A DNA stretch of 64,000 bases from Phallusia mammillata. Its lineage: Eukaryota. The DNA lies in the NCBI GenBank assembly GCA_965637545.1, contig OZ281499.1:1488001-1552000 (forward strand), in the 5' to 3' direction. The notes beneath the pieces are model-generated. The model worked only from the letters and a program-made list of their open reading frames with translations. It ran no database searches and was not told the origin of the DNA. The translations under genes and the position numbers were made by a program. Shown here piece by piece: positions 1,086-59,967 of the stretch. Position 1 is the stretch's first letter. Each line of letters starts with the position of its first letter.

Positions 1086-2292
1086 ATGACGTGTAGTATT
1101 GATGACGCTGCAGAGCAGTTTTGTGACGTAATAACGACAAACAATGACGTAATTCCTGAGTTGTGGGATATGGACAAGTTAGGGGGAAGGCTGGAGGACA
1201 AAATTTTGGACAGAATTCGATTTCTGAGGGAAAAGAAAAAGAAACAAATAACATTTTCCAAGCCAACTTACAAAACGTTTGAGGTTTCTGGTTCGAACGG
1301 AAACATGCTTATTCGGCAAATTATTGCTGTTTTTAGCGACAAAGAAATCTACAAACCTGGCATGTGCATCGTGTTGACGGTGGATAACGAGCCAGATGCA
1401 GCGATTGTTGTGTTTAAAGAAGGTCGACCTGAAACCTTCACCGCACCGAAGAAAACTGAGCAAGAAAGGGCATTGTGGGACAAAATGTTCTCAGATAGCA
1501 TGTGTGATGTGTGGAGGGAAAACGATATAGCAGGGTTTGACTCAGTTAACCTTGAAACAAAACGCAAAGATTTCGCAGAAACTTTTTTTAAACTTTGGAA
1601 CTTACCATTCGGGAAAATTGACCCACTTTATCGTCATGTTTTCTATGCATTGGTTTCCGAAATAGCAAAACCCAAAATGCCGTTTCATTTGGATCACGAT
1701 ACATACAAGCACATTCCCACTGCTGCTTGTATCAAAATTGCGATTGAAATCGGGCAAACCGGTCGTTTGGAGAATGTTTTTGGGGCGCGTAAAGGCCCAA
1801 CCAAACAAGCACAGGGCGAAGCTAGTCAAGATGCAGTTGACAACATAAAATCTATTCCAAAACACGAATGGAGACTCAACGAGGCGAAAGCCATGAGTAA
1901 AATGTGAGTGAAGTTGCTCAGTTTAAGGCAAATATCTCTTGTAATGCTGATCAATATTTCGGGTAAATTTTTCAAAAAAGTAACGCGTATTACTGAATTT
2001 AATTGGTTTATGTTCGCAAACTGCCTACAGTTGTGATTTTTTAAATCCTGTCGGTATTGAAAGTTGTGTGGCAAATTGAAACGTCAACCATTTAGAATTA
2101 ATTTACAAACATGTTTGGTGCAAAGAACCAGTAACAAAACAAGACGTATTGAAGCGATAACGATGTCGTTGATAGTGATTAAAATATTTCATGTTCAGGT
2201 ATCTTGGAGACAAAGATGGGGAAAACTTTCCACAGGAGAACGTTACAGCGAAGGTTGAAGAAATGAAGAAGTTTTTCGCCTTAGAAAATTAG
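1086..2292 (+). CDS. Unknown tandem family ('MTCSIDD' family) copy 1, intact, two exons (1086-1903, 2199-2292), 303 aa
   Basis: ORF 1077-1907. Its stop lies inside the GTGAGT donor at 1904. Acceptor ttcag at 2198; exon 2 reads in frame (M)YLGDKDGENFPQENVTAKVEEMKKFFALEN*. The same structure recurs in all paralogs. Confidence 0.85.
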
Positions 2293-3154
2293 TGAAAACA
2301 CGTGTGCATTTCTTCTGTGTTTGTGTTCATCACAGATCGTAAATAAAAATCAAATTTTATAATAAATCTTACGTTGATTTGAAATGTGTTTTGCTCCGAA
2401 CGTGGCATATTTTTTTTATAAACAGAACACAGAATATTCACACCTATTAATAATAGCGTCCAAAGATTTTTTGCGTTACAAGTTGGAGGTATTATGACGT
2501 CACTTTTTTAGGTTATGTGACGTCACAAGTTCGCGTTATTATTGCATCACCTGTTTGGGTTATCGTGGCGTTACATAATTGGATAAATGGAACTTTGCAG
2601 ATAAATTTATAATGTTTGTGAGAGTTCTATTATGGAGGTTCTGACTTCTTCTCTGTGGTTTGTCCGCTCCACTATATATTGTGCTTCCGCAATGTGTTTA
2701 ATAAACGCCCTCAAATAAGTGTTTTTGCTCAAAGTAGGCAATGCAATGGTGAACGAAAGTTTGTCAACAAAACGTGAACATAAATAACTTTATTCTTGCT
2801 TTATATTTTTATATTTTATATAAAAATTGATTGCTCACAACATTCACAAAAACCAGTTTGTTTTCCAACTGTCACGACTATATTGCGTTACTGTGATGGC
2901 GCAACGTCAAACAATACCTTTCAAAACCTGTTTTGGAACATCCAATATGTAACAGGAGAAGAGTAATTTGATGAGTGACAGCATTGTGACAAAGTACTTT
3001 GAAATAGAGAGTCAAGTCACCAGAAGGGGGATTTACCGTTTTAATTGTATTGTGAAATGTTTTTTTCAATCATGTTGAAAAGGACTGCGACTTTTTTAAA
3101 ATCTTCACTTGTATGTTATGAAATTATCTGCGGACAACCTGTGAAGTGCCAGAC

Positions 3155-4630
3155 ATGACGTGTAGTATCGATGACGCTACCGAGCAGTTTTGTGACGTAA
3201 CATGGACAACCGATGACGTTATAACAGAATTGAAGGACATGGAAATGTTAGGTGGAGCGTTGGAAAGAAAAATTATGAGAAGAATTCGAGTTCTGAAAAA
3301 GGAAAAACACGGGCAAATAACGTTTGCAAAACCAACTTACAAATCGTTGGAGGTTTCTGGTTCAAACGGAAACTTGTTTGTTCGGCAAATTATTTCAGTT
3401 TTGAGCAAAAGTGAAATTTACAAGCCTGGCATGTGTGTTGTATTGATGGTGGATCACAAACCTGATGGGGCGATTGTCGTTTTCAGAGCTGGGCGGTCAG
3501 AAGTTATAACAACGCAGGGAAACCCGAAATGTAATACCGTCCGCTGGGACCACATTTTTTCTGACAGGTTGTCTGAAGTTTGGCGGAACAATGGGATACC
3601 AGGTTTTGAGCTGACTGATCTTGAAACTAAACGAAGAGAATTTGTTGAAAATTTTCCCAAAATTTGGAAATTACCATTTGCGAGAATAGATCCAGTTGAA
3701 CGCCATTTTCTTTACGGATTGGCATTCGAGATGGCAAAACCCAAAATGTCATTTCATTTGGATCACGATGGCATTAAACACATTCCTTCTGCTGCTTGTA
3801 TTAAGATCGCAATGGAAACTGGTCAGACAGGTCAGTTAGAGACAGTGTTTGGGGCGCGTAAACCCCCAAACCCACAGGCAAGAATTGCTGCTGGTCAAGA
3901 TGAAGTTGACAACACCGAATGCGTTCCAAAACACGAAAGGCGGCTCAATCAGGCGAAAGCCATGATCAGAATGTGAGTAGCAGCGTTCGTCTAACACAGT
4001 GTTTCTTAACCTTTTTAGTGCTTGTACCCCTTGAGCTTTCATGACATTTTCTCGTACCCCCTGTCTACAATGGCCGATGGAAGTAAACAGTAATGCGAAT
4101 TAAACTCAGTGTATTTATAACTTACATGTTGAATGCATGCATTAAAATAGTCTTGTAAGTTCAACACCAACAATCAGTCAATTCAAATCAACTACACATA
4201 ACAAAGTAATCTGTTACGCATTCTTCACAAATATGCCTAAATAATGTATAATTTCACACCGACTGTCGTACCCCCTGCTTTGGTGCTTTGTGTCCCCAAG
4301 GGGAACCTGTACCCCTGGTTAAGAACCCTTGGTCTAACACAACGTTAAAAAATCGACTTTTTTATTGGATAACTTCAAATATTTGTTGTAAATTTAAATC
4401 ATCGAATAATTTGGGTTAAAACAAGCCATTTTACCTAAAACAGTGGAGTTTACATTTCCGAAAGGTAAACGAAACGTATATAGACGCTATATATAGCTGT
4501 TTAGAAGGATGTAATGAAAAATAAATTTATGTTTAGGTATCTGGGAGACAAAGATGGAGAAAACTTTCCACAGGACAACGTTACAGCAAAAGTTGAAGAA
4601 ATAAAGAAGTTTTTCGCCTTAGAAAACTAG
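3155..4630 (+). CDS. MTCSIDD family copy 2, intact (exons 3155-3972, 4537-4630)
   Basis: ORF 3146-3976, donor GTGAGT at 3973, acceptor tttag at 4536, in-frame exon 2 YLGDKDGENFPQDNVTAKVEEIKKFFALEN*. The intron carries a MITE. Confidence 0.85.
3997..4331. mobile_element. hAT-type MITE in the intron of family copy 2
   Basis: Imperfect TIR CAGTGTTTCTTAACC/GGTTAAGAACCCTTG, perfect 8-bp TSD gtctaaca. Absent from the intron of sister copy 10. Confidence 0.85.
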
Positions 4631-4825
4631 TTTCAACTTGCCAATGGACAACACTGTATATAGTGTGCACTTGTTACATGTTTGTGTTTGTCACATATAT
4701 GATTATGATGTTATAATTCAATTTTATTTTGTAATAAACGATCTATTGATCACAAATGTGTTTTGTCACACAACCCGCAAAGTTTCATTTTAAAACAGCA
4801 CCTTAAGTTATGTTATATGCTTATA

Positions 4826-5240
4826 GGGCTGTACTAAGCAACATAGTACACCACACCTGTTAAAGGCGTTAACGCCTAAAGACCAGGCTGTAGCGGCCTC
4901 TCTCACTACCGTTGTCGTGTGCCTTCATACTACAGCGAACCGGACAGATTGCCTTCTTTCTCTAACTCTCGTCTTATGCGGCGTATTCGCTCATTGTGTT
5001 GTTCTATTACGATGCACCTTGAATAAACACCTCGCTACAAGGCGTACCGTGATTTCGCTATCATTGTGCCATGATCGCTGGTCTGCATTTACGCTTCAGG
5101 GCTGGTCCCAGTTATAACTTTAGGTGTATGTAATCTAATAAGCGTGATACAAGTGTCCTGGATATTAACGACAAGCCGTGTCGCATAAGTTTCTGAAGGA
5201 AATTTCGTTATGTGCTGTATTATTGTAATTGTAAATGTAA
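4826..5240 (+). repeat. ~400-bp repeated block downstream of family copies 2, 3 and 11 (also ~7866-8290, ~53552-53950)
   Basis: High nucleotide identity between copies; the small ORFs in it are not conserved in length. Confidence 0.75.
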
Positions 5241-6243
5241 TTTTTCAAGGAGTAAAAGAATTCAGCAAAACAAAGTTGGACAAGGTGTTATTTAAACATA
5301 GCGTTATTTGCCTGCATATATAAGTTATGGCGTTTCTCAAATTGAACTTCTTTTCTTAAAAATAAGAGAAATTTTTTTCAATGGGTTCGACGCTTCCGGG
5401 GACGAATCCCGATCAAATTTTTTTTTATGTATGTGGGTCAGGCGCGCCGGAACATTCGGCCAAGTTCCTGCCCCGAAAACAAAACAAAAAAACAATTGCC
5501 GGCGTAACACCATGTAGCACTAACTAGCGGCAGCGCACTAATAGATGATGTACGTCGGCCGGGCTTTTCAGGCCGGTTTCGGGAACGGCTTGAATAAAAC
5601 GGGCTTGAATCGGATCTGACTTTATACTTAGCTACACCTGTGTCTTAATTTTGTTAAGTTGCAGCTAGCTCTAGATCTGGCTTAATTTGAAGAAAGCAAT
5701 TGGACCCGGGTCAAGTGCGGCTTTGCTTACAGCTCTGAGCGTACTACAGCAAAACTATGAAAGCCGCCAAGAAAGCCAAATGAAACCGTAAAAAACAACG
5801 AAATATTCCCACGCCTTGTACAGAAATATAATGTTGGATTGTTACCAAGATATCGAACTTTTGAAAAGTTTATGACGCTCAGTTAAGAATTAACTATTTG
5901 GTGGATATTTACTTGATTGTATTGCGCGAAACCACAGTAACGTAAATCGAATCCCTTACATATGACGTAACACATTCCTTTTTATTCATTTACCGAAGCC
6001 GATGTGTAACACCAGAACAAAGGGCATGGGTGAGAATTTGATCAGTGAAATATCGTCTTACATTTATCCATAACATACAACGTTGCTGGACGCGTCAAGG
6101 ACATGTTGGTTGTAAACATTTTTCACACTAGAAGTTGCTGCAATATTAGAGCCGAAAATGGACAACTAACGCAAACCTAACCAGTGATATAAAATTGATA
6201 GTAATGACCTCACTGTGTCAACGTAGAACTCAAAACCCCTTTG

Positions 6244-6329
6244 TGACGTAGCGCGTTTAGGTTTATCACGCGAAGGGGAAACGAAAGTCTGCAAACGGGA
6301 CATGCCCCCTTTCAATGATATGGCGCAAT
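6244..6329 (+). promoter_or_regulatory. Candidate inducible enhancer of copy 3: CRE-like TGACGTAG, IRF/ISRE-like GGGGAAACGAAAGT, kB-like GGGACATGCCCC, C/EBP-like TGGCGCAAT
   Basis: Motifs at 6244, 6275, 6297 and 6321. Same order at 54681-54766, 12131-12219, 58717-58802 and, on the - strand, upstream of 45609 and 47887. Function is inferred from motif similarity only. Confidence 0.45.
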
Positions 6330-6413
6330 CTGCTTGTGTATATGAACTGGAAAATTCAATATGAAGTGGATTTGTTTTCGGCTCGCTTCCCAAGAAGACT
6401 TTAACTGACAGAT

Positions 6414-7700
6414 ATGACGTGTAGTATTGATGACGCCGTTGAACAGTTTTGTGACGTAATAACGACAAATGATGAGGTTGTGTCTAAGTTGCGGGATATG
6501 AACAAGTTAGGGGGAGGGTTGGAGGAAAAAATTAGAAAAAGAATTGAAGAAATTGTGCAGGAGATGAAAATAAAACTAACGTTTTCAAAGCTCACTTACA
6601 AATCGCTGGATGTTTCTGGTACGAACGGAAACTTACTAGTTCGACAAATCATCGCTGTTTTTGCAAATAGGGAAATTTACAAACCTGGCATGTGTATCGT
6701 GTTGACGGTGGATAACGAACCGGATGCAGCGATTGTCGTGGTTAAAGAATGTCGACCTGAAACCTTTACAGTGCCGAAGAAAACTGATCATCAAAGAGCA
6801 TTGTGGGACAAACTATTTTCAGATAGCAGGTGTGAGGTTTGGAAAGAAAAAGGAAGAACAGAATATGAACCAAATGACCTTGAAACAAAACGCAGAGATT
6901 TTGCAGAACATTTTTCCATACTTTGGAACTCACTATTCGGTGAAATTGATCCACTTTATCGCCACATTTTCTTTGGCTTGGCAACAGAAATGGCAAAACC
7001 CAAATTGAAGTCTCATGTGGATCACGATGTCTACAAGCATATTCCTACTGCTGCGTGCATCAAAATCGCAATTGAAACCGGACAGACAGGTCGTTTGGAG
7101 AATGTGTTTGGGGCGCGTACAAAGCGAGTCAGACAGCAGGCACAAAGTGAAGTTGGTCAAGATGTAGTTCACGCATCTGAATTAGTTCCAAAGCACGAAC
7201 GGCGGCTTCGTGAAGCAAAAGCCTTGATCAGAATGTGAGTTTACACGTTCAAACTGAGATAGAGAAGTATATCTCTTTCAGATGTGGAATGTTAATTTTG
7301 GCAAAACCACTCAACGTGTTAGTTTATTACGTTCGTTAACAAATCGTTTGTTTTAGAAATTAGTGTGACTATCTTAATAAGTTATGGCGTTCTCAAAACT
7401 TTTTTTACAAACTAGTCTGGCTAATTTTTGCTCATTTTTTTATATCCGGATGTTATCAAAAGTTAAGTGGCAAAATGTGAACGACATTTAGCGGATATTC
7501 GGTTAATTATATGCAAACATGTTGGGTGCAAACAACCAGTAACAAAACAAAACGTACTCAAGCGATGACGATGTCGTTGGTAGTAATGAAACTATTTTAT
7601 GTTTATGTATCTGGGAGACAAAGACGGAGAAAACTTTCCACATGAAGACGTTTCAGCAAAGGTTGAAGAAATAAAGAAGTTTTTCGCCTTAGAAAACTAG
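6414..7700 (+). CDS. MTCSIDD family copy 3; exon 1 intact (6414-7234), exon 2 (7607-7700) preceded by a mutated acceptor
   Basis: 274-aa ORF. The acceptor reads gtttat|gtat instead of gtttag|gtat; the exon 2 frame is still open. Confidence 0.7.
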
Positions 7701-8793
7701 TTTCAACTTTAGAAAACTAGGACAACACTGTATATAGTGTGCACTTGTTACATGTTTGTGTTTATCACATATATGATTATGATGTTATAATTCAATTTAT
7801 TTTGTCACACAACCCGCAAAGTTTCATTTTAAAACAGCACCATTAAGTTATGTTATATGCTAATAGGGCTGTACTAAGCAACATAGTACACCACACCTGT
7901 TGAAGGCGTTAACGCCAAAAGGCCAGACTGTAGCGGCCTCTCTCACGACCGTTGTCGTGTGCTTCCATACTACAGCGAACTGGACAGATTGCCTTCTTTC
8001 TCTGACTCTCGTTTTATGCGTCGTATTCGCACATTGTGTTGTCCTATTACGATGCACCTCGAATAAACACCTCGCTACAAGGCGTACCGTGATTGCGATA
8101 TGATTGTGCCGTGATCGCTGGTCTGCATTTACGCTTCAGGGCTGGTCCCAGTTATAACTTTAGGTGTATTTAATCCAATAAGCGTGATACAAGTGTCCTG
8201 AATATTAACGAATAGCCGGGTCGCATAAGTTTCTGAAGGAAATTTCGCTATGTGCTGTATGAATGTAATTGTAAATGTAATTTTTCAAGGAGTAAAAGAA
8301 TTCAGCAAAACAAAGTTGGACAAGGTGTTATTTAAATATAGCGTTATTTGCCTGCATATATCAGTTATGGCGTTTCTTAAATTGAACTTCCTTTCTTAAA
8401 AATAAGAGAACTTTTTTTCAATGGGTTCGACGCTTCCGGGGACGAATCCCGATCAAAGTTTTTTTATGTATGTGGGTCAGGCGCGCCAGGACATTCGGCC
8501 AAGTTCCGCCCCGAAAACAAAACAAAAAAACAATTGCCGGCGTAACAACATGTAGCACCAACTAGCGGCTGCGCACTAATAGATGATGTACGTCGGCCGA
8601 GCTTTTCAGGCCAGGTTCGGGAACGGCTTGAATAAAACGGGCTTGAATCGGACCTGACTTTATACTTAGCTACACCTGTGTCGTATTTTTGTTAAGTTGC
8701 AGCTAGCTCTAGATCGGGATTAATTTGAAGAAAAAATTTAGACCCGGGTCAAGTTCGGCTTCGCTTACAGCTCTGAGCGTACTACAGCAAAAA

Positions 8794-9419
8794 CTATGCC
8801 TTGGCTCTCGAAATGGCAAAACCGAAGATGCCGTTTTTTTGGGATCGTCGCTACCAGCATATTCCTGCTGCCGCTTGCATTAAAATTGCGCACGAAACTG
8901 GTCAAACTGGTCGTTTGGAATGGATTTTTGGTTCGCGACGAGTGCAGGATGGACCAGCGAAAAGCGAAACTGGCCTGGATTTAGTTGACAGCAACGATTT
9001 GATTTTGAAATACGAACAGCGACTCAGTGAAGCAAAGTCTATGATCAAAACGTGAGTCAAAACATTCGGTTTGAGACACAAAGACCTGATGCGTTAAGTT
9101 TTCTCAACATTTCAGAAGTATGAAGTTAGCTCAACAAGCTTTGTTTATTGGTTCGAGTTCTGTGAAGATATTATACTCATAAAGAAAATATATATTTGAC
9201 GATAAATTTAAATAATCGGTAAACTTGTTCAGTTCTAATTTCCAAATAGCCTATATAGAACATAACATTTGTAACACAATGCCGAGTTGCTGGGAAGCAA
9301 TTGTAAAGCAATCAAATGATTTGATTTTCAGGTATCTTGGAAACAAAGATGACTTTTCTCGGGCGAACGTCACAGCGAAGTTTAAGGAAATGAAAAACTT
9401 CTTCGCTTTGGAAAACTGA
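8794..9419 (+). pseudogene. MTCSIDD family copy 4, 5'-deleted fragment (last ~85 codons of exon 1 plus exon 2 at 9332-9419)
   Basis: Homology starts abruptly at ctatgccttggctctcgaaatgg and is nearly identical to the 3' end of copy 12. No promoter core or start upstream. Confidence 0.8.
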
Positions 9420-9519
9420 TAGCAACCTTTTACATCGTATGCACTTGTTCTGTATTTGCTTTTACCACTGTTTGATTGTTGTATTTTTAAACGTGATTTT
9501 ATAATACACGATGTATCGA

Positions 9520-9745
9520 TTGTGGCGAGAAGTACTTCCCGACTCCATGCGCTCTTTAGTGTCGACAGCGCATGATCACCACCTGGAAAGCATTTCCCTA
9601 GAAACCTAGACCTACCTGGGTCAAGCTCAATCGTCTTCGCACCGGCATTTGCATTTTCGCTCAACTTTGCACAGGTCGACATTGTGCAGAGGAGCAGGCC
9701 GCATAGTAACAATCTGGCCTATTTACCCCCAACCGTATGAGTCTT
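9520..9745 (+). mobile_element. Degenerate 3' end of the same LINE family (second copy ~56115-56340)
   Basis: Encodes ...PPG...WVKLNRLRTG...CAEEQ with frameshifts. Confidence 0.6.
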
Positions 9746-10190
9746 AAGTAGAGTTGTAAACGGTCCTGAAATTGGAGCCCGAACCCGAAAGTACAAGTTC
9801 GATGGTGCAAGGGTTTCAAAAACTGCAGTTACAGACTTGTGTGAGAAATATTGTCTTTCAATCAGCCGTGACATTGAACTTTGACGCGCCCAGAAACATT
9901 TATAGATGGACTCACCCACAACATCTAAATAGATTCTGCATCTAAAAAAAGCTCAAACGCTGCTTTGTAATGTTTTCGCGGTATTGGTTGGACGTGCTCC
10001 AGAACGAATTCTTAAAAGGCAAATTGCGGAAGTTAGGGTTTTCGCGAGACGGAAAGGGAAAGTCAGCCAAAGGGGGCGTGACCCTGTATGGCACAATATA
10101 CTGTTGGGCCATGTTCATCTTGACTATGACTTCAAATAAAAAGCCGCATTTGCACCAGATTTGCCGCGAACAGGTCATGAACTGACAATC

Positions 10191-11476
10191 ATGACGTGTA
10201 GCATTGATGACGCTGCCGAGAAGTTTTGTGACGTAATATCGATGAACGATATCGTAATTCCTGAGTTGTGGGATATGGATAAGTTGGGGGGAGCTTTGGA
10301 GGACAAAATTATGGACAGAATTCGAATCCTAAGGGAAAACGAAAGAAACAAATAGCATTTTGCAAGCCAACTTACAAATCGTTCGCGGTTTCTGGTATGA
10401 ACGGAAACTTGCTCGTTCGGCAAATCATTGCTATTTTTAGCGACAAAAAATGTACGAACCTGGCATGTGTATCGTATTGATGGTGGATAACGAACCGGAT
10501 GCAGTGATTGTCGTGTTCAATGAAGGCCGACCTGAAACCTTTACCGCACCGAAGAAAACTGAGCATCAAAGAGCAATGTGGGATAAAATATTTGCAGACA
10601 GCATGTGTGATGTGTGGAGGGAAAAAGGAAAAACAGAATATGAGTCAAACGACCTTGAAACAAGACGCAAAGATTTTGCAGAAACTTTTTCCAAAGATTG
10701 GAACTCTCCATTCGGGGAAATTGACCCACTTTATCGCTACATTTTCTTTGGCTTGGCAACAGAAATGGCAAAACCCAAATTGAAGTCTCATGTGGATCAC
10801 GATACATACAAGCACATTCCTACTGCTGCGTGCATCAAAATCGCAATTGAAGCCGGACAGACAAGTCGTTTGGAGAATGTGTTTGGGGCGCGTACAAAGC
10901 GAGTCAGACAGCAGGCACAAAGTAAAGTTGGTCAAGATGTAGTTCACGCATCTGAATTTATTCTGAATATAGCACAAACGGCGGCTTCGTGAAGCAAAAG
11001 CTTTCATCAGAATGTAAGTTTACCCGTTCGAACTGAGACAGAGAAGTATATATCTTTTAGAGGCTAAATGTAAATTTTGGCAAAACACTTAACGTGTTAG
11101 TTCATTACTTTCGTTAACAAATCGTTAGTTTAGAAATTAGTGTGACTATCTTAATAAGTTATGGCGTCCTCAAAACTTTTTTTTACAAACCAGTCTGGCT
11201 AATTTTTGCTCATTTTTTTATATCCGGACATTATCGAAAGTTAGTGCCAAAATATGAACGCGTTTAGCGGATATTCGGTTAATTATTTACAAACATATTC
11301 GGTGCAAATAACCAGTAACAAAACAAAACGGTTTGAAGCGATAACGATGTCGTTGGTAGTAACCAAATTATTTCATGTTTAGGTTTCTCGGAGACAAAGA
11401 TGGGGAAACCTTTTCACATGAGAACGTTACAGCGAAGGTTGAAGAAGTGAAGCAGTTTTTTGCCTTGGAAAACTAG
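10191..11476 (+). pseudogene. MTCSIDD family copy 5, frameshifted pseudogene
   Basis: 1-nt deletion near 10340 gives TAG at 10353, a second 1-nt deletion lies near 10448, and there is a length change near 10960. ORF split into 10161-10355 and 10450-10992. Exon 2 at 11383-11476. Confidence 0.85.
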
Positions 11477-12303
11477 CGGCAACTTGCCAATGGAATAACA
11501 TCGTATATCGTGTGCGCTTACTTTATGTTTGTGTTTAACATAATACAATTATGTTGCTATATTTCAAAACTAATTTGGTAATAAACGATTATGATCTTTA
11601 TGACATTTAGTTTGATTCTGTTTGAATAAGAACGACTGATGATGCCCTTATCGGTGAAATATATATCGTTAAACAACATTTGTTGACTAATTCTGATTAG
11701 AAAGCACTGTCAAATACTTCGTCAATTATTCTTACATGATCTTTATGACGCTAAGTTAATATTAACTCTTGGTCGATATTTATTATAAAGTGTTGCGGGC
11801 CACCTCAGCAACGTAAATCAAATCGCTTACACATGACGCAACACATTCATCTTTACTCTTTATCTATTACTGAAGCCGTGGCGTAACACCAGAACAAAGG
11901 GCATGGGTGGGAATTTGATCAGTGAAATATCGTTTATCCATAACATATCACGTTGCTGGACGCGTCAGGGACATGTTGGTTGTAAACTTTGTTCACACTA
12001 AGTTAGAAGTTGTTGCAATATTTAATCATTATTGAAGCCGAAAATGGACAAGTAACGCAAACCTAACCAGTGATGATAATTAAGTATTGACCCCCACTGT
12101 GTCAACGTAGAATCCACGCGCGTCCTATTGTGACGTATATCGTGATCAGGTTTAACTCGCATAGGGGAAACAAAAGTGAGCTAACGGGGGATTCTCCTTT
12201 TCGACAGTGTGGCTCAATCTGTTTGTACAAGTAAACCGGGACCTTCAATAAAAAGCACAGTTCGTATCTGGATTACTTCCCAACAAGACGTAAACTGACA
12301 GCC

Positions 12304-13390
12304 ATGACGTGTAGTATTGACGACGCCGTTGAGCAGTTTTGTGACGTAATAACGACAAACGATGAAGTTGTGCCTGAGTTGTGGGAAATGCAAAAGTTAG
12401 GTGGACAGTTGGAGAAAAAAATTAAGAAAAGAATTGAAAAAATTGTGCAGAAGAAGAAAATAAAACTAACGTTTTCCAAGCTCACTTACAAATCGCTGGA
12501 TGTTTCTGGTTCAAATGGAAACTTACTTGTTCGGCAAATTATTTCGGTTTTTAGCAGAGAGGAATTTTACAAACCTGGCATGTGTATCGGGTTGACGGTG
12601 GAAGACATCGACAAGCCTGATGCAGCGATTGTTGTGTTTACAAAGGGCCGGGTAGAACTTTTTGACGCACCGCAGGAAAATGAGAATGAAACAATACATT
12701 GGGACGTTATATTTTCGGACAGGATGTGTAAAGTTTGGAGGAATCTTGGGACACCAGGATACGAGCCAGCTGATCTTGAAACAAAACGCAGGGAATTTGC
12801 AGAAACTTTTCCTAAACTATGGTGCACCACATTCAGTAAAATGGATCTAGTTGAACGCCATTTTCTTTATGGCTTGGCATTAGAGATGGCGAAACCCAAA
12901 ATGCCGTTTCATTTGAACCACGAAGACATTAAGCACATTCCTACTGCTGCTTGCATCAAAATTGCGATTGAAATGGGTCAGACAAGTCGTTTGGAGTTGG
13001 TTTTCGGGTCACGTAAAAAAAACGAAGCCAGTCAGGATTCGCTTGGTAACATCGAATTTGTTCCCAAACACAAACTACGACTCAATGAGGCAAAAGCTAT
13101 AATCAAAACGTGAGTATAAAAGTTTAGCTTGCGATAAAAAGGCACGTTTTCATCATTATACATTTTATGTGTCTAAAATTTATGTCAAAAATTACAAAAA
13201 GCAGGTTTATGGTATTGTCGAATTATTTTAATTGAACTTAGCTTACATGATACCGAGCTGATTTGCAAAAACTAAAAATAATCAATTTATTTTGTTGTTT
13301 AGTTATCTCGGAGACAAGGATGACTTACCCCACACAACTGTTACAGGAAAGATTGAAGAAATCAAAATATTTTTTGCCTTAAACCTTTAA
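12304..13390 (+). CDS. MTCSIDD family copy 6, intact (exons 12304-13109, 13303-13390)
   Basis: 269-aa ORF, GTGAGT donor, tttag acceptor, exon 2 YLGDKDDLPHTTVTGKIEEIKIFFALNL*. Confidence 0.85.
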
Positions 13391-44047: not shown

Positions 44048-44127
44048 CGTAATAACGACAAACGATGACGTTGTGGAATATGGACAAGTTATGGGGAGAG
44101 TTGGAAGACAAAATTGTGGCCAGAACA
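44048..44127 (+). pseudogene. MTCSIDD family copy 7, short degenerate 5' fragment
   Basis: gtgacgtaataacgacaaacgatgacgttgtgg...ttggaagacaaaattgtggccagaaca matches the DVITTNDDVV...LEDKIVART coding sequence with indels. Confidence 0.75.
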
Positions 44128-47887: not shown

Positions 47888-48910
47888 GTTCTTCAGTTTA
47901 CGTCTTGTTGGGAAGCGATCCAGATGGAACTTCGCTTTTTATTGAAGTTCCCAGGTTAACTTATACAAGCAGATTGAGCCACACTTTCAAAAAGGTGCAT
48001 TCCCCGTTAGGTGACTTTTGTTTCCCCCTCGCGTAATAAACCTGATCGCGATATACGTACGTCACAATGTAACATGCGTAGGTTCTACGTTGACACAGTG
48101 AGATTAATAGTTTTTCATCACTGGTAAAGTTTGCCTTATTTGTCTTTTATCGACTTCAAAGGATACTTACATGTTGCGACAGCTTCCGAGTCTGGACAAG
48201 TTCACAATCAAAATATCCTTGACGCGTCCAGCAACATTTCAACCATCAAATTCCCCATCATGCCCTTTGTTCTCGTGTTACACTTTGGCTTCGATCAATG
48301 ATTAAAGGAATGTATCGCGCCACTTGTAAGCTTTTTGGTTTACGTTGTTGAGCTTTCGCGCAATACTCTAAAGTAAATACCCACCAAATTGTTAATACTT
48401 AACCCAGTGATTCTTCAACTGTATTCTGCGGCACGCTGATGATCCCGCAGAGATGTCAAAGCGTGCAGCGGAATATTCGTTATTTTGTACTGGAAACATT
48501 CTCTTATGTTTTCGGGTTTGATGAACAAATGTGACTTGTATGATAACGTTTTAAAGTTATTTCATACTTATTTGTCATAAAAGCAATTCCATCACACTAA
48601 CGTTGCAAACTAATTTCTTTTGATAACTTTTGTGTCGTTGCCCTGCTCATTGAGAAGTTTTAGACACAAGCACAGAGTAAATACAGGTTTGCATCTCGTT
48701 TGCCGGTCAATCATTATCAAATAAAATGCGACTTGTAGTAAAAACGTCAATCAAAAATAATTGGAAAATGTAAACCACAAAACCATTAGTTTTAAGCTTG
48801 TTGCCAAAACATAAAAGGCGCAAAGCAATGTAAATAATTTACAAACATTTAGCGGCGAAAACAAACATACAATAAGTACACTTAATACATTGTCCACTGA
48901 CAAGTTGTCG

Positions 48911-50015
48911 TTAGTTTTCCTAGGCGAAAAACTTCTTTATTTCTTCAACCTTGGCTCTAACGTTCTGCTGTGGAAAGTTTTCGCCATCTTTGTCTCCCAG
49001 ATACCTTAAAGTTAAAAAAAATTATAAATTTTACAGCAAGCTGCGTTCTATTAAAGAAATCAAAGTAAATTGACTTGTTTTAACCCAAAGTTTTAACCCA
49101 AATTATTCGACGAAAATCACAGGATATTCAAACAAAATTTGAAGTTATTATTTGAAAAAGTGGACCAATATTTGGTTAGAGTTAGACCAATGCTTCTACT
49201 CACATTCTGATTAAGGCTTTCGCCTGATTAAGCCGCCGTTCATGATTTGGGATATGTTCAGTGTTGTCAACTACATCTTGACCAACTTCGCTTCTTGCCT
49301 GTGGGTTTGGAGGTTTGCGCGCCCCAAATACCATCTCCAGCTGACCTGTCTGACCAGTTTCCATTGCGATCTTAATACAAGCAGCAGTGGGAATGCGTTT
49401 GATGCCATGGTGATCCAAATGAAACGGCATTTTTGGTTTCGCCATTTCGAATGCCAAGCCGTAAAGAAAATGGCGATCAACTAGATCGGTTCTCGCAAAT
49501 GGTAATTTCCAAATTTTGGGAAAATTTTCAACAAATTCTCTTCGTTTTGTTTCAAGATCAGTCAGCTCGAAACCTGACGTCCCATTGTTTCTCCAAACCT
49601 CAGACAACCTGTCAGAAAAAATGTGGTCCCAGCGTACGGTATTACATCTCGGGTTTCCCTGGGTTGTTATAACTTCTGACCGCCCCGCTTTAAAGACAAC
49701 AATCGCCCCATCAGGCTTGTGATCTACCATCAATACAATACCTATGCCAGGTTTGTAAATTTCATTTTTGCTAAGTACTGAAATAATTTGCCGAACAAAC
49801 AAGTTTCCGTTTGAACCAGAAACCTCCAAGGATTTGTAAGTGGGTTTTGCAAACGTTATTTGCCGGTCCTTTTTCAAAACTCGAATTCTCCTCATAATTT
49901 TTCTTTCCAACGCTCCGCCTAACATGTCCATGTCCCTCAATTCTGTTACAACGTCATCGTTCGTCGTTATTACGTCACAAAACTGCTCGGCAGCGTCATC
50001 AATACTACACGTCAT
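48911..50015 (-). CDS. MTCSIDD family copy 10, intact (exons 50015-49204, 49004-48911); closest to copy 2
   Basis: ORF 49200-50024, canonical splice sites, in-frame exon 2. Shares the QGNP(R/K)CNTVRWDHIFSDRL segment with copy 2. Confidence 0.85.
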
Positions 50016-51110: not shown

Positions 51111-52099
51111 CCCGTCAATGCACATATATCTTGACACAGAAGATCAGAACACATCATAACATCCTGCAACATTTACCGTCATCCGAATGGGTTTTAAAGT
51201 CGGACAGCTGTCGACGAATCTATCAATTTAAATAGATGATCTTCTGAACTATCCTGCTCATACGAAGAAGAATCCCAGTTTACAGAACTGAAAGTACAAA
51301 ACGTGTAATATCAATTTTCCTTAGCGACTCAACGCACCCAGGAAGATTCTATACTATATGCTGCTATGCTTGCAGTATAAAAGTCATTAGGATAATTTTG
51401 AAGCAGAAAGTATGAAGTAATCCGTCCTGTGATTTCTATATGAGTGTGCCGTGTTCACTTGTCTGCATGGACGCTTCAGGACTGATCCCAGTTATGAAAT
51501 TATGTTTATCTTAATCAAACTGGTGTTGATTATACTTCATGCAACGTAATGAGCATACATATGTTTGTTGACTCGGTGTTGCTAATGTCGTGACATGCCA
51601 CAACGATGTTGGTTGTTGAAATAACCTAGTCGTCTCACGTACTTACAAAAACTTTTGATAACTATTAGCTGGTGATGTTATTACATCATTCCGATGGTAC
51701 AAGGGTTTCCAAAAAAATTCAGTTACAGACCTGTGTGTGAAATATTGTCTTTCAATCAGCCATGACATTGAACTTTGACGCGCCCAGAAACATTTATAGA
51801 TGGACTTCTGTCGTCACACACACAACATCTAAATATATTCTGCATCTAAAAAAAGCTCAAACGCTGCTTTGTGATGTTTTCGCGGTATTGGTTGGACGTG
51901 AACCTAAACGAATGCTTTTAAAGGCAAAATGCGGAAGTTGGGGCTTTTGCGAGACTCAAAGGGAAATTCAGCCAAAGGGGGCGTGACCCTGTAAGACGCA
52001 GTTTACTGCTGGGCTATGTTTATCTGCTGAACTATGACTTTAAATAAGAACCCCGCATTTGCACCAGATTTGCTGCGTAGAAGTTGTGAACTGACAGAA

Positions 52100-53386
52100 A
52101 TGATGTGTGGCAGTGATGACGTTGTCGAGCAGCTCTGTGACGTAATAACGACAAACGATGACGCTGTGCCTGAGTTGTGGGACATGGACAAGTTAGGGGG
52201 AGGGTTGGAGAAAAAAATTAGAAAAAGAATTGAAGAAATTGTGCAGGAGAAGAAAATAAAACTAACGTTTTCCAAGCTCACTTACAAATCGCTGGATGTT
52301 TCTGGTACGAACGGAAACTTACTAGTTCGGCAAATCATCGCTGTTTTTAGCGACAAAAAAAATTACAAACCTGGCATGTGTATCGTGTTGACGGTGGATA
52401 ACGAACCGGATGCAGCGATTGTCGTGGTTAAAGAAGGTCGACTTGAAACCTTTACAGTGCCGAAGAAAACTGATCATCAAAGAGCATTGTGGGACAAACT
52501 ATTTTCAGATAGCAGGTGTGAGGTTTGGAAAGAAAAAGGAAGAACAGAATATGAACCAAACGACCTTGAAACAAAACGCAGAGATTTTGCAGAAAATTTT
52601 TCCATACTTTGGAACTCACTATTCGGGAAGATTGATCCACTTTATCGCCATGTTTTCTATGGTTTGGCATCAGAAATGGCAAAACCCAAGTTGAAGTCTC
52701 ATGTGGATCACGATGTCTACAAGCATAATCCTACTGCTGCGTGCATCAAAATCGCAATTGAAACCGGACAGACAGGTCGTTTGGAGAATGTGTTTGGGGC
52801 GCGTACAAAGCGAGTCAGACAGCAGGCACAAAGTGAAGTTGGTCAAGATGTAGTTCACGCATCTGAATTAGTTCCAAAGCACGAACGGCGGCTTCGTGAA
52901 GCAAAAGCCTTGATCAGAATGTGAGTTTACACGTTCAAACTGAGATAGAGAAGTATATCTCTTTCAGATGTGGAATGTTAATTTTGGCAAAACCACTCAA
53001 CGTGTTAGTTTATTACGTTCGTTAACAAATCGTTTGTTTTAGAAATTAGTGTGACTATCTTAATAAGTCATGGCGTTCTCAAAACTTTTTTTACAAACTA
53101 GTCTGGCTAATTTTTGCTCATTTTTTTATATCCGGATGTTATCAAAAGTTAAGTGGCAAAATGTGAACGACATTTAGCGGATATTCGGTTAATTATATGC
53201 AAACATGTTGGGTGCAAACAACCAGTAACAAAACAAAACGTACTCAAGCGATGACGATGTCGTTGGTAGTAATGAAACTATTTTATGTTTATGTATCTGG
53301 AAGACAAAGACGGAGAAAACTTTCCACATGAAGACGTTTCAGCAAAGGTTGAAGAAATAAAGAAGTTTTTCGCCTTAGAAAACTAG
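52100..53386 (+). CDS. MTCSIDD family copy 11; exon 1 intact (52100-52920), exon 2 (53293-53386) acceptor mutated as in copy 3
   Basis: The start variant MMCGSDD aligns to the family start. The acceptor reads gtttat|gtat. Nearly identical to copy 3 from mid-exon 1 through ~1 kb downstream. Confidence 0.7.
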
Positions 53387-54850
53387 TTTCAACTTTAGAA
53401 AACTAGGACAACACTGTATATAGTGTGCACTTGTTACATGTTTGTGTTTATCACATATATGATTATGATGTTATAATTCAATTTATTTTGTCACACAACC
53501 CGCAAAGTTTCATTTTAAAACAGCACCATTAAGTTATGTTATATGCTAATAGGGCTGTACTAAGCAACATAGTACACCACACCTGTTGAAGGCGTTAACG
53601 CCAAAAGGCCAGACTGTAGCGGCCTCTCTCACTACCGTTGTCGTGTGCTTCCATACTACAGCGAACTGGACAGATTGCCTTCTTTCTCTGACGTCTTATG
53701 CAGCGTATTCTCACATTGTGTTGTCCTATTACGATGCACCTCGAATAAACACCTCGCTACAAGGCGTACCGTGATTGCGATATGATTGTGCCGTGATCGC
53801 TGGTCTGCATTTACGCTTCAGGGTTGGTCCCAGTTATAACTTTAGGTGTATTTAATCCAATAAGCGTGATACAAGTGTCCTGAATATTAACGAATAGCCG
53901 TGTCGCATAAGTTTCTGAAGGAAATTTCGCTGTGTGCTGTATTATTGTAATTGTGATTCAAAGTGTAAACAAATTCGTCCTGGTAATCTCAGATCGGGTT
54001 CTGGGTAAGGCTTTAATAAAACGGGCTGAAATAGACCTGACTCCACACTTAGCTACACCTGTGTCGCAATTTTGTTGAGTTGCGGCTCTAGAACGGGCTT
54101 AATTTGAAGAAAGCAATTGGACCGGGTCAAGTTCGGCTTCGCTTACAGCTCTGTGCGTACTATACATTAAAAACTACGAAGGTCGCCAAAGATGCCAAAT
54201 GAAACTGTAAAAAACAACGAAAAATTCCCACGCTTTGTACAGAAATATAATGTTGGATTCTTACCAAGATTTCGCTCTTGTGAAAAAGTTCATGACGCTC
54301 AGCTAAGTATTAACTATTTGGTCGATATATTTACCATAAAGTATTGTGGGCCACCTCAGCAACGTAAATCGAATCCCTTACATGTGACGTAACACATTCC
54401 TTTTTATTCATTTACCGAAGCCGTGGCGTAACACCAGAACAAAGAGCATCGGTGAGAATTTGATCAGTGAAATCTCGTCTTACGTTCATCCATAACATAC
54501 AACGTTGCTGGACGCGTCAGGGACATGTTGGTTGTAAACATTTTTCACACTAGAATTTGCTGCAATATTTAATCATTATTAAAGCCGATAATGGACAAAT
54601 AACGCAAATCTAACCAGTGATATGAAATTGATAGTAATGACCTTACTGTGTCAACGTAGAACTCAAAACCCCTTGCATTGTGACGTAGCGCGTTTAGGTT
54701 TACCACCCGAAGGGGAAACGAAAGTCTGCAAACGGGGAATGCCCCCTTTCAATGATATGGCGCAATCTGCTTGTATATATGAACTGGAAAATTCAATATG
54801 AAGCGGATTTGTTTTCGAATCGCTTCCCAACAAGACTTCAACTGACAGAT

Positions 54851-56014
54851 ATGACGTGTAGTATTGATGACGCCGTTGAGCAGTTTTGTGACGTAATAAC
54901 GACCAGCGATGACGTTATGCCTGACTTGTGGGATATGGAAAGGTTAGGGGGAGAGTTGGAAGAAAAAATTGTCGCCAGAACTCGAATAATCAAAGTGAAT
55001 TTAAGAAAGCAAATAACATTTTCCAAGCCAACTTACAAATCGCTTGAAGTTTCTGGTTCGAACGGAAACTTACTTATTCGACAAATCATTTCGTTTTTTG
55101 GCGACAAAGAAATCTACAAACCTGGCATGTGTATCGTGTTGACCTTAGATAACAAGCCAGATGCAGTGATTGTTGTGTTCACTGAAGGTCGGGTGGAACC
55201 TATAACTTTGCCAAAAAAGACTGAGGAAGATAGAATGTACTGGGATAAAATATTTTCAGACAGCAGATGGAGAAATCAAGGGCTATCGAGTCATGAACCA
55301 CTTGACCTTGAAACAAAGCGCAAAGATTTTGCAGAAGTTTTTCCAAAGCTCTGGAACTTATCACTGGAGAAAATTGACCCAGTTTATCGCCATATCTTCT
55401 ATGCTTTGGCTCTCGAAATGGCAAAACCGAAGATGCCGTTTTTTGGGGACTGTCGCTACCAGCATATTCCTGCTGCCGCTTGCATTAAAATTGCGCTCGA
55501 AACTGGTCAAACTGGTCGTTTGGAATGGATTTTTGGTTCGCGACGAGTGCATGATGGACCAGCAAAAAGCGAAGCCGATCAGGATTTAGTTGACAACAAC
55601 GATTTGATTTTGAAATACGAACAGCGACTCAGTGAAGCAAAGTCTATGATCAAAACGTGAGTCAAAACATTCGGTTTGAGACATAAAGCCCTGACCCAAA
55701 TTTTGTCAACATTTTAGAAGTTTGGAGTTAGCTCAACAAGCTTTGTTGATTGGTTTGAGTTCTGTGAAGATTGTATACTCGTAAATAAAATATATACCTA
55801 ACGTTAAAATAAAATAGTCCGTAAACTTGTTCAGTTCTAATTTCCAAATATAGAACATAACATTTGTCACACAATGCCGAGTTGGTGGGAAGAAACTGTA
55901 AAGTAATCAAATGATTTTATGTCCAGGTATCTTGGAAACAAAGATGACTTTCCTCGGGCGAACGTCACAGCGAAGTTTAAGGAAATGAAAAACTTCTTCG
56001 CTTTGGAAAACTGA
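54851..56014 (+). CDS. MTCSIDD family copy 12, intact (exons 54851-55656, 55927-56014)
   Basis: ORF 54752-55660; the family-aligned ATG is at 54851. Acceptor tccag, in-frame exon 2. Confidence 0.85.
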
Positions 56015-56785
56015 TAGCAACCTTATATATCGTATGCACTTGTTCTGTATTTGCTTTTACCACTGTATGATTGTTGTATTTTTAAACGTGATTTTATAAT
56101 ACACGATGTATCGATTGTGACGAGATGTACTTCCCGACTCCATGCGCTCTTTAGTGTCATCAGCTCATGATCACCACCTGGAAAGCATTTCCCTAGAAAC
56201 CTAGACCTACCTGGGTCAAGCTCAATCGTCTTCGCACCGGCATTTGCATTTTCGCTCAACTTTGCACAGGTCGACATTGTGCAGAGGAGCAGGCCGCATA
56301 GTAACAATCTGGCCTATTTACCCCCAACCGTATAAGTCTTAAGTAGAGTTGTAAACGGTCCTGAAATTGGAGCCCGAACCCGAAAGTAGAAGTTCGATGG
56401 TGCAGGGATTTCAAAAACTGCAGTTACAGACTTGTGTGAGAAATATTGTCTTTCAATCAGCCGTGACATTGAACTTTGACGCGCCCAGAAACATTTATAG
56501 ATGGACTCACCCACAACATCTAAATAGATTCTGCATCTAAAAAAAGCTCAAACGCTGCTTTGTAATGTTTTCGCGGTATTGGTTGGACGTGCTCCAGAAC
56601 GAATTCTTAAAAGGCAAATTGCGGAAGTTAGGGTTTTCGCGAGACGGAAAGGGAAAGTCAGCCAAAGGGGGCGTGACCCTGTATGGCACAATTTACTGTT
56701 GGGCCGTGTTCATCTTGACTATGACTTCAAATAAAAAGCCGCATTTGCACCAGATTTGCCGCGAACAGGTCATGAACTGACAATC

Positions 56786-58067
56786 ATGACGTGTAGCATT
56801 GATGACGCTGCCGAGAAGTTTTGTGACGTAATATCGATGAACGATATCGTAATTCCTGAGTTGTGGGATATGGATAAGTTGGGGGGAGCTTTGGAGGACA
56901 AAATTATGGACAGAATTCGAATCCTAAGGGAAAACGAAAGAAACAAATAGCATTTTGCAAGCCAACTTACAAATCGTTCGCGGTTTCTGGTATGAACGGA
57001 AACTTGCTCGTTCGGCAAATCATTGCTATTTTTAGCGACAAAAAATGTACGAACCTGGCATGTGTATCGTATTGATGGTGGATAACGAACCGGATGCAGT
57101 GATTGTCGTGTTCAATGAAGGCCGACCTGAAACCTTTACCGCACCGAAGAAAACTGAGCATCAAAGAGCAATGTGGAATAAAATATTTGCAGACAGCATG
57201 TGTGATGTGTGGAGGGAAAAAGGAAGAACAGAATATGAGTCAAACGACCTTGAAACAAGACGCAAAGATTTTGCAGAAACGTTTTCCAAAGATTGGAACT
57301 CTCCATTCGGGGAAATTGACCCACTTTATCGCTACATTTTCTTTGGCTTGGCAACAGAAATGGCAAAACCCAAATTGAAGTCTCATGTGGATCACGATGT
57401 CTACAAGCATATTCCTACTGCTGCGTGCATCAAAATCGCAATTGAAACCGGACAGACAGGTCGTTTGGAGAATGTGTTTGGGGCTCGTACAAAGCGAGTC
57501 AGACAGCAGGCACAAAGTGAAGTTGGTCAAGATGTAGTTCACGCATCTGAATTAGTTCCAAAGCACGAACGGCGGCTTCGTGAAGCAAAAGCCTTGATCA
57601 GAATGTGAGTTTACACGTTCAAACTGAGACAGAGAAGTATATCTCTTTTAGAGGCTAAATGTAAATTTTGGCAAAACACTCAACGTGTTAGTTTATTACT
57701 TTCGTTAACAAATCGTTAGTTTAGAAATTAGTGTGACTATCTTAATAAGTTATGGCGTCCTCAAAACTTTTTTTTACAAACCAGTCTGGCTAATTTTTGC
57801 TCATTTTTTTATATCCGGACATTATCGAAAGTTAGTGCCAAAATATGAACGCGTTTAGCGGATATTCGGTTAATTATTTACAAACATATTCGGTGCAAAT
57901 AACCAGTAACAAAACAAAACGTTTTGAAGCGATAACGATGTCGTTGGTAGCAACCAAATTATTTCATGTTTAGGTTTCTCGGAGACAAAGATGGGGAAAC
58001 CTTTTCACATGAGAACGTTTCAGCGAAGGTTCAAGAAGTGAAGCAGTTTTTTGCCTTGGAAAACTAG
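56786..58067 (+). pseudogene. MTCSIDD family copy 13, frameshifted pseudogene sharing two lesions with copy 5
   Basis: Same two 1-nt deletions as copy 5 (ORFs 56756-56950, 57045-57608). Exon 2 at 57974-58067. Confidence 0.85.
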
Positions 58068-58889
58068 CGGCAACTTGCCAATGGAATAACATCGTATATC
58101 GTGTGCGCTTACTTTATGTTTGTGTTTAACATAATACAATTATGTTGCTATATTTCAAAACTAATTTGGTAATAAACGATTATGATCTTTATGACATTTA
58201 GTTTGATTCTGTTTGAATAAGAACGACTGATGATGCCGTTATCGGTGAAATATATATCGTTAAACAACATTTGTTGACTAATTCTGATTAGAAAGCACTG
58301 TCAAATACTTCGTCAATTATTCTTACATGATCTTTATGACGCTAAGTTAATATTAACTCTTGGTCGATATTTATTATAAAGTGTTGCGGGCCACCTCAGC
58401 AACGTAAATCAAATCGCTTACACATGACGCAACACATTCATCTTTACTCTTTATCTATTACTGAAGCCGTGGCGTAACACGAGAACAAAGGGCATGGGTG
58501 GGAATTTGATCAGTGAAATATCGTTTATCCATAACATATCACGTTGCTGGACGCGTCAGGGACATGTTGGTTGTAAACTTTCTTCACACTAGAAGTTGTT
58601 GCAATATTTAATCATTATTAAAGCCGAAAATGGACAACTAACGCAAACCTAACCAGTGATGATAATTAAGTATTGACCCCCACTGTGTCAACGTAGAATC
58701 CACGCGCGTCCTGTTGTGACGTATATCGTGATCAGGTTTAACGCGCACAGGGGAAACAAAAGTCAGCTAATGGGGGATTCCTCTTTGCGACAGTGTGACT
58801 CAATCTGCTTGTACAAGTAAACCGGGACCTTCAATAAAAAGCGCAGTTCGTATCTGGATTACTTCACAACAAGACCAAAACTGACAGCC

Positions 58890-59967
58890 ATGACGTGTAG
58901 TATTGACGACGCTGTTGAGAAGTTTTGTGACGTAATAACGACAAACGATGACGTTGTGCCTGAGTTGTGGGGTATGGACAAGTTAGGTGGAGAGTTGGAG
59001 GACAAAATTATGGACAGAATACGAATCCTAAGGGAAAAGAGAAAGAAGCAAATAATGTTTTCCAAGCCAACTTACAAAACGTTCGAGGTTTCTAGTTCAA
59101 ATGGAAACTTACTTATTCGGCAAATCATTGCTGTTTTTAGCGACAAAGAAATCTACACACCTGGCATGTGTATCGTGTTGACTTTAGATAACAAGCCAGA
59201 TGCAGCGATTGTCGTGTTCAGTAAAGGTCGGGTAGAGCCTATAACTTTGCCGAAGAAAACTGAGCAAGATAGAGCAATGTGGGATAAAATGTTCTCAGAT
59301 AGCATGTGTGAGGTGTGGAGGGAAAACGAAATAGCTGGGTTTGACTCAGTTAATCTCGAAGCCAAACGCAGAGATTTCGCAGAAACTTTTTCCGAACTTT
59401 GGAGGTTACCATTCGGGAAAATTGATCCACTTTATCGCCATGTCTTCTATGGCTTGGCATCAGAAATGGCAAAACCCAAATTAAAGTCTCATTTGGATCA
59501 CGATGACATTAAGCACATTCCTACTGCTGCTTGCATCAAAATTGCGATTGAAATCGGTCAGACAGGTCGTTTGGAGTTGGTTTTCGGGTCACGTAAAAAA
59601 ACCGAAGCCAGTCAGGATTCGCTTGGTAACATCGAATTTGTTCCCAAACACAAACTACGACTCAATGAGGCAAAAGCTATAATCAAAACGTGAGTATAAA
59701 AGTTCAGTTTGCGATAAAAAGGCACTTTTTCATCATTATACATTTTATGTGAATAAAATTTATGTCAAAAATTAAAAAAAAACAATTTTAGGGTATTGTC
59801 GAATTATTCTTTTAGAACTTATATTATACCAAGCTGATTTGCAGAGACTAAAAATAATCAATTTGTTTTGTTGGTTTAGTTATCTCGGAGACAAGGATGA
59901 CTTACCCCTGACAACAGTTACAGAAAAGATTGAAGAAATCAAAATATTTTTTGCCTTAAACATCTAA
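58890..59967 (+). CDS. MTCSIDD family copy 14, intact (exons 58890-59689, 59880-59967)
   Basis: 267-aa ORF, canonical splice sites, exon 2 YLGDKDDLPLTTVTEKIEEIKIFFALNI*. Confidence 0.85.

Follow-up and report, generated by a model that had tools for sequence, protein, structure and literature searches.

A constrained two-exon gene family of ascidians, multiplied by duplication and gene conversion in Phallusia mammillata

Tunicates are the sister group of vertebrates and their intracellular innate immunity is poorly mapped, while orphan families are common in their genomes. Here, we describe a cluster of two-exon genes found in the ascidian Phallusia mammillata, in a stretch of contig OZ281499.1 (assembly GCA_965637545.1, positions 1,488,001 to 1,552,000 of the forward strand) that is referred to below as the window and that measures 64 kb, with about 38% G+C and zero N. 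A tblastn search with one copy as query recovers 13 copies of the large first exon, each followed, 190-560 nucleotides (nt) to its 3' side, by a conserved second exon of about 30 codons, and when the six-frame translation is scanned with a profile, an N-terminal fragment comes to light as a 14th copy. The copies form three sub-clusters, namely c1-c6 on the plus strand (1086-13390), c7-c9 on the minus strand (44444-50015) and c10-c13 again on the plus strand (52100-59967), the fragment lying on the plus strand at 44022-44159; a BTB-BACK-Kelch gene is located between the sub-clusters. An earlier note, made from the letters alone, had given the same count of 14, the same span, strands and three sub-clusters, and both searches agree with it. 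The copies are as follows.

1086-2292, plus strand: c1, intact; exon 1 1086-1903, intron of 295 nt, exon 2 2199-2292; 303 amino acids (aa)
3155-4630, plus strand: c2, intact; exon 1 3155-3972, intron of 564 nt, exon 2 4537-4630; 303 aa
6414-7700, plus strand: c3; exon 1 6414-7234 unbroken, donor intact, exon-2 homologue at about 7607-7700
8795-9419, plus strand: c4, pseudogene; exon-1 remnant 8795-9049, exon-2 homologue 9315-9419
10191-11476, plus strand: c5, pseudogene; exon 1 10191-11014, exon-2 homologue 11366-11476
12304-13390, plus strand: c6, intact, mosaic; exon 1 12304-13109, intron of 193 nt, exon 2 13303-13390; 297 aa
44022-44159, plus strand: 14th copy, N-terminal remnant; profile positions 10-45 in two frames, at an inversion boundary and adjoining c7
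44444-45609, minus strand: c7, intact; exon 1 45609-44801, intron of 269 nt, exon 2 44531-44444; 298 aa
46758-47887, minus strand: c8, intact, mosaic; exon 1 47887-47070, intron of 218 nt, exon 2 46851-46758; 303 aa
48920-50015, minus strand: c9; exon 1 50015-49204, intron of 199 nt, exon 2 49004-48920; 298 aa
52100-53386, plus strand: c10; exon 1 52100-52920 unbroken, exon-2 homologue at about 53293-53386
54851-56014, plus strand: c11, intact; exon 1 54851-55656, intron of 270 nt, exon 2 55927-56014; 297 aa
56786-58067, plus strand: c12, pseudogene; exon 1 56786-57605, exon-2 homologue 57957-58067
58890-59967, plus strand: c13, intact, mosaic; exon 1 58890-59689, intron of 190 nt, exon 2 59880-59967; 295 aa

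Each gene is made of a large exon 1 of about 270 codons and a small 3' exon 2 of about 30 codons. In every copy exon 1 ends in phase 2 with ..AT/GTGAGT or ..AC/GTGAGT (the slash marks the splice site), and exon 2 starts with (G/T) TAT CTN GGA directly after a TTYAG acceptor. Clean GT..AG splicing to unbroken open reading frames (ORFs) of 295-303 aa is found in eight copies (c1, c2, c6, c7, c8, c9, c11 and c13). The two-exon structure that had been proposed is therefore right, and the motifs that had been picked out as characteristic of the family are the invariant columns in an alignment of the 10 unbroken exon-1 ORFs.

The coexistence of intact, splice-damaged, frameshifted and deleted copies is likewise borne out. 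In both c3 and c10 the acceptor AG has become TG; c5 and c12 have two 1-nt deletions in common, to which c5 adds a private 4-nt insertion; in c4 nothing but the final ~88 codons is left of exon 1, its 5' part being deleted relative to c11, and the 14th copy is truncated as well. In c9 a stop lies 3 codons ahead of the usual end (after ..KKFFA); its product is probably functional, and the comparison of c9 with c2 gives a ratio of nonsynonymous to synonymous proportions (pN/pS) of 0.23. In all copies the reading frame of exon 1 is closed by a TGA that overlaps the GTGAGT donor (e.g., 7232-7237 in c3), so that an unspliced message would encode the protein minus its 30-residue tail; for c3 this would be a tail-less protein of 274 aa. 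Intron retention would thus be a built-in route to two isoforms, and this may be the reason why c3 and c10 are still constrained (pN/pS 0.42, P=0.004). The frameshifted pair c5 and c12, with 18 substitutions, has a pN/pS of 0.52 (P=0.15), indistinguishable from neutral.

Relatives of the family were sought by an exhaustive hmmsearch of a profile of 10 window copies against 1.84 billion representative proteins, which returned 28 proteins at E<=1e-3, one of them spurious, and 11 at E<=1e-10, the best at E 1e-19. The 11 best matches span profile positions from about 30 to 270 and are thus similar along the full length of the profile. The relatives are 127-319 aa long, bar the spurious match, P0020, a 1032-aa TPR repeat protein aligned through 11 short matches, which was discarded. 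All the named matches are annotated as ‘uncharacterized protein’ of Ciona intestinalis or Clavelina lepadiformis, the closest being LOC104266160 (XP_009860047.1) and LOC100175694 (XP_002129972.3) in Ciona, and CAK8672537.1, CAK8672149.1, CAK8695974.1 and LOC143452275 with its paralogues in Clavelina. These proteins match the window copies over the full length of the profile (E 1e-14 to 1e-4), are of equal length and carry the signature E-I-G-x-x-T-G-N..R, K-L-F-D-D, R160, Y-R-x-A-F-x-G-L-L, P-x-A-A-C-I-K-L-A and V-F-G (c1 numbering), and their C-terminal tail aligns with exon 2 of the window genes; they are only 16-23% identical to them, and have no described function, name or Pfam family. The unnamed relatives come from contigs of 32-39% G+C in which one long ORF stands among sparse tiny gene calls and which look like eukaryotic host DNA in metagenomes. 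On the relatives' contigs the gene is single-copy within ±10 kb, and neither the Kelch neighbour nor the cysteine-rich ORFs of the window (see below) are found near it. In one of these anonymous loci, L002, a tail exon lies 1.1 kb downstream of a donor-like ORF end, and a GT..AG intron with a tail exon is kept between ascidian orders. A word-seeded search of 5.8 billion proteins with one copy found nothing, and the same kind of search with a profile of 30 family sequences gave one match only, already in the query alignment. The family is, as far as HMMER can see, restricted to ascidians.

A maximum-likelihood tree unites the window copies in a single clade with a long stem (100/100) and the two Ciona proteins in a separate clade (99/98); three of the four Clavelina proteins also group together, with good support (100/98). 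This grouping by species means that the expansion is lineage-specific. In Clavelina, too, a local array is suggested, by several near-identical paralogues with consecutive accession numbers in one record. On the evidence of the sequences, one ancestral gene has given rise in Phallusia mammillata to a private clade through tandem, inverted and ~10-kb segmental duplication.

At the protein level, searches of Pfam, NCBIfam, PADLOC, PHROGs and PDB sequences yielded no credible match, whether the query was a window copy or any of 30 members of the family; a PDB profile match to alpha-glucan phosphorylase, which covers 56 residues in a helical region at E 0.0025, was taken as chance. No signal peptide or transmembrane segment is present, as had been noticed, the highest 19-residue Kyte-Doolittle mean being 1.39 and the N-terminus acidic, and the product is probably a soluble, intracellular protein of about 300 residues. 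AlphaFold run on 10 paralogues alone gave an unusable model (pLDDT, the predicted local distance difference test, of 36), and from an alignment of 30 sequences the structure was predicted with high confidence. The model consists of an N-terminal alpha/beta part (strands 27-29, 61-66, 93-99, 102-111 and 114-119) followed by a helical part (125-273), and in searches of the whole chain against solved structures with Foldseek and against BFVD it found no relative. The statement of the earlier note that no domain can be recognised thus stands after both sequence searches and a structure search of a confident model. Provisionally, since the chain was searched as a whole, the model corresponds to no known fold, and a probable new fold is suggested. 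On the basis of these negative searches and of one predicted model, the proteins lie outside every described family within reach of the searches. We found no paper naming the two Ciona genes, general literature searches gave nothing on the family, and PMC12373286 treats neither Ciona nor tandem orphan families; the family can be called undescribed in this sense, with the qualification that its Ciona and Clavelina homologues are already public as uncharacterized proteins.

Residue conservation was assessed on one window copy and 24 distant relatives, in c1 numbering. The first element of the signature, E66-I-G68-x-x-T-G72-N-x-L-L-R77, covers the end of a strand, a glycine-rich loop and the N-terminus of a helix. 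It is followed by [KR]128-x-x-[YFW]131-x-K133-L-F135-D136-[DE]137, by Y182-x-x-A-F186-x-G188-L-L-x-[DE]192 and by P211-x-A-A-C215-I-K-L-A219, with further signature positions at G92, A106, R160, F170 and F232-G233. The conserved charged residues E66, K133, D136, D/E137, R160 and D/E192 around a glycine-rich loop are as would be expected of a catalytic or ligand-binding site.

The history of the cluster can be read in part from comparison of the window with itself. A segment of about 10 kb is present twice, as copy A at 6403-16310 on the plus strand and copy B at 52089-63466, 91-97% identical; copy A carries c3-c6 and copy B c10-c13, each with a 2.2-kb flank. Within the duplication c4 is truncated relative to c11. 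Lesions common to both blocks show that the pseudogenes had died and the acceptor had been lost before this duplication took place. c10 is a chimera in which a promoter of the c5/c12 type is joined at the ATG to a body of the c3 type, 97% identical to c3 (51692-52100 compared with 9800-10190 and with 6403), the junction lying within about 11 nt of the ATG. By sliding best-match analysis, c13 resembles c6 at both ends and c1/c7/c11 in its middle, c8 resembles c7/c11 in front and c1 at the back, and c1 and c6 are composite too. We attribute these mosaics to gene conversion or unequal exchange, much of the apparent patchwork to gene conversion, and the variety in the cluster as a whole to old duplication, gene-conversion mosaics and the ~10-kb segmental duplication. 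The duplicated flanks themselves (14069-16310 and 61218-63466) are 94.8% identical and contain short matching open frames on the minus strand, e.g., 15124-15360 and 62263-62517.

The 45 pairs of unbroken exon-1 ORFs all have a ratio of nonsynonymous to synonymous rates (dN/dS, or omega) between 0.19 and 0.50 by the Nei-Gojobori method, with dS from 0.11 to 1.4; omega is significantly below 1 in each intact pair (P 9e-4 to 1e-11), and pN/pS, pooled over five phylogenetically independent pairs, is 0.20-0.81 in every 20-codon window, all of these being pairwise and sliding-window values. Diversifying selection was not found: dN/dS exceeds 1 neither overall in the 45 pairs nor in any 20-codon segment. 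The family is under moderate purifying selection, with omega of about 0.2-0.5. Since pairwise and windowed values are all below 1, it is constrained and not ‘rapidly diversifying’, as the earlier note had it, and the segments there called highly variable are loops and helices under weaker constraint, in a protein that is conserved elsewhere, and have been reshuffled by conversion. As for the birth-and-death cytosolic family that had been proposed, both births, by tandem, inverted and segmental duplication, and deaths, in six damaged copies, are seen, and the product is probably intracellular and soluble. As a genomic phenomenon, tandem birth and death with gene conversion is ordinary.

The upstream regions of the genes fall into three classes, about 60% identical overall, and a conserved block is found about 90-170 nt upstream of the ATG in every full-length copy of all three classes. 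An example is the block of c3.

6244-6329, plus strand: promoter block of c3, with an IRF-core-like AAACGAAAGT, a kappaB-like site of the GGGRNNYYCC type and a C/EBP-like TGGCGCAAT

The IRF-core-like element of the block is AAACGAAAGT or GAAAGGGAAAGT, the C/EBP-like element is TGGCGCAAT or TTGTGAAAT, and the kappaB-like site lies at -115 to -128; these are matches at the level of motifs, at fixed positions in all three promoter classes. Strict kappaB matches number five in 3 kb of family promoters and zero in about 28 kb of other window sequence, and for a relaxed kappaB-type pattern five of the 10 matches in the whole window fall in family promoters, with 3.5 matches expected by chance. The C/EBP pattern is degenerate and not enriched beyond chance in the window. 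The block hints at inducible expression, and it is the one line of support for the innate-immune or conflict role that the earlier note had proposed. An ACAG or CCAG, conserved 2-4 nt upstream of the ATG in most copies (e.g., 6408-6411 and 12298-12301), could be a leader acceptor if the genome trans-splices; the promoter block would then be part of an outron.

Among public sequencing runs, none that is on record as RNA holds this stretch. In two DNA-type runs, which may be the assembly's own sample, contigs tile c1-c2 exactly at even depth. The c2 intron contains a very high-copy dispersed repeat (about 3956-4430), whose summed contig depth in the two DNA runs exceeds that of its flanks several hundred-fold, and wide coverage in the runs guessed to be RNA is confined to this repeat.

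The sequences show a constrained, ascidian-restricted family that was expanded by duplication, conversion and decay, and the explanation given here is, as a whole, somewhat more probable than its opposite. One part of it, taken alone less likely than not, is put forward tentatively, namely an inducible intracellular stress or defence family whose members would probably be enzymes or ligand binders. In this proposal, the proteins would act inside the cell as a dosage-amplified family, inducible in stress or defence through the shared IRF/kappaB/C/EBP-like promoter block, and would probably work as enzymes or ligand binders by means of one functional site formed from E66 (before the G-x-x-T-G-N loop), K133-L-F-D136-[DE]137, R160 and [DE]192. 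The exon-2 peptide (..[DE]G.[YF]...[VI]...K.F[FY]..) would form a C-terminal amphipathic helix, a tail that could be omitted in unspliced mRNA through the TGA overlapping the donor.

The proposal can be set beside the IFIT cluster of vertebrates, made of interferon- and NF-kB-inducible, intron-poor two-exon paralogues with soluble cytoplasmic products, pseudogenes and IRF-type sites near the coding start. The likeness would be one of working only, namely an intron-poor two-exon cluster with pseudogenes, soluble products and, no farther than about 200 nt from the start of the coding sequence, sites of the IRF type. The two have no relation in sequence or fold, no TPR is present in the window family, and the order of its exons, large first and small last, is unlike that of IFIT. 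No interferon is known in tunicates.

Several observations weigh against the proposal. The structural model rests on only 30 sequences, and no segment has dN/dS>1, unlike many recognition-type immune families. A strict interferon-stimulated response element (ISRE) pattern is present only at the promoters of c5 and c12, both pseudogenes; the motifs are short and, the promoters being paralogous, motif counts and enrichment are not independent. Upstream of the genes of three relatives in other species (L001, L002 and L005), no such block was found. As for expression, a single exact contig of 190 nt (1663-1852, in c1 exon 1) was found, at depth 3.6, and the run that it comes from is RNA by guess only; the contigs of public runs, which cannot show splicing here, contain no spliced junction.

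That the family is at once the founding example of a fold absent from solved structures and an IRF/NF-kB-driven, tandemly amplified intracellular defence enzyme of ascidians appears unlikely. If it were true, the family would parallel, in an invertebrate chordate, the interferon-stimulated gene clusters of vertebrates, in its logic though not in its descent. If the promoter block answers IRF and Rel factors, an induced response ancestral to chordates would have its readout in these genes, and perhaps an effector as well; should it not answer them, a probable new fold is still left. The claim of novelty concerns the proteins as a family and not a demonstrated system: a family confined to ascidians, with a confidently predicted fold, multiplied independently by species and unlike any described protein, is a concrete target, and its Ciona homologues are tractable.

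The rival that survives best is a family expressed in bursts in the germ line or the early embryo, which would deliver much transcript fast in oogenesis or at zygotic genome activation with no link to defence. A dosage-driven family of this kind is fitted by an intron-poor multicopy cluster with species-specific clades, by purifying selection with no diversifying patches and by the parallel multiplication suggested by the consecutive Clavelina accessions. However, nothing ties the genes to embryos and the promoter block looks more like sites for stress or immune factors, itself a weak reading, and we judge this explanation improbable.

Somewhat lower in our estimation stands a very divergent version of a known enzyme fold missed by the searches, for which three candidates were considered. 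Pol-beta-type nucleotidyltransferases (CD-NTases CdnD/CdnG, JHP933 and AAD(9)) likewise have an alpha/beta part followed by a helical part, share the element of strand, glycine-rich loop and helix, and recur among the weak Foldseek rows; re-alignment and motifs led to their rejection, the hG[GS] loop, the [DE]h[DE]h with a third carboxylate and the nucleotidyltransferase core fold not being found in the family. Ribosome-inactivating proteins (RIPs) of the ricin A chain type gave the longest structural alignments listed (136-149 residues), which place residues 56-273 of the model on nearly the whole chain, and both have a long central helix with an acidic residue near its end. A ricin-like N-glycosidase was nevertheless rejected by Z score, root mean square deviation (rmsd) and residue conservation, and the family shows neither the catalytic Tyr, Tyr, Glu-x-x-Arg and Trp of RIP (PF00161) nor the RIP fold. 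A CE-clan cysteine protease of the Ulp/adenain type was rejected by the same three measures, with no His-Asp/Asn-Cys triad having its Cys at a helix N-terminus in the family.

An assembly error, in which haplotypes of a highly heterozygous ascidian had been placed side by side, could have inflated the copy number, and both the 91-97% identity of the blocks at 6403-16310 and 52089-63466 and a 6.36-kb tandem duplication of 99.98% identity in the neighbouring Kelch gene would fit it. Yet the blocks differ in structure (c4 is truncated and c11 whole, c10 and c3 have promoters of different classes, and c5 has its private 4-nt insertion) and have diverged unevenly, dS being 0.11 for c3/c10 and 0.38 for c6/c13. 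The window has no gaps, c1-c2 are tiled exactly and at even depth by the two DNA runs that may be the assembly's sample, and 10 copies would be left even without block B. Haplotype inflation is thus very improbable. The least probable rival, in which the gene stems from or travels with a mobile element or virus and was multiplied by selfish spread, could appeal to the high copy number, the one long ORF and the high-copy repeat in the c2 intron, but the units have no terminal inverted or long terminal repeats around them (the only inverted repeats are oppositely oriented genes) and no transposase, integrase, reverse-transcriptase or viral domain or BFVD match, the host-type GT..AG intron and tail exon are kept between ascidian orders, the contigs of the relatives carry one copy within ±10 kb, the window copies are local and not dispersed, and no confident match to a housekeeping or transposon protein came from the domain and structure searches.

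As for the neighbours of the cluster, two adjacent cysteine-rich open frames of 114 and 131 codons on the minus strand (22000-22884) resemble exons of a secreted protein; Pfam gave no match for them, and a collagen NC1-like domain that had been considered was not confirmed. The tandem duplication of the Kelch gene (27933-40650), with a single mismatch, repeats the BACK and first Kelch exons, and is either a very recent event that disrupts the gene or an assembly artefact. Between Kelch exons, on the minus strand, an imperfect tandem repeat at 41589-41890, whose translation includes reiterated ..GTQPIRTLL.. units, is probably an intronic minisatellite.

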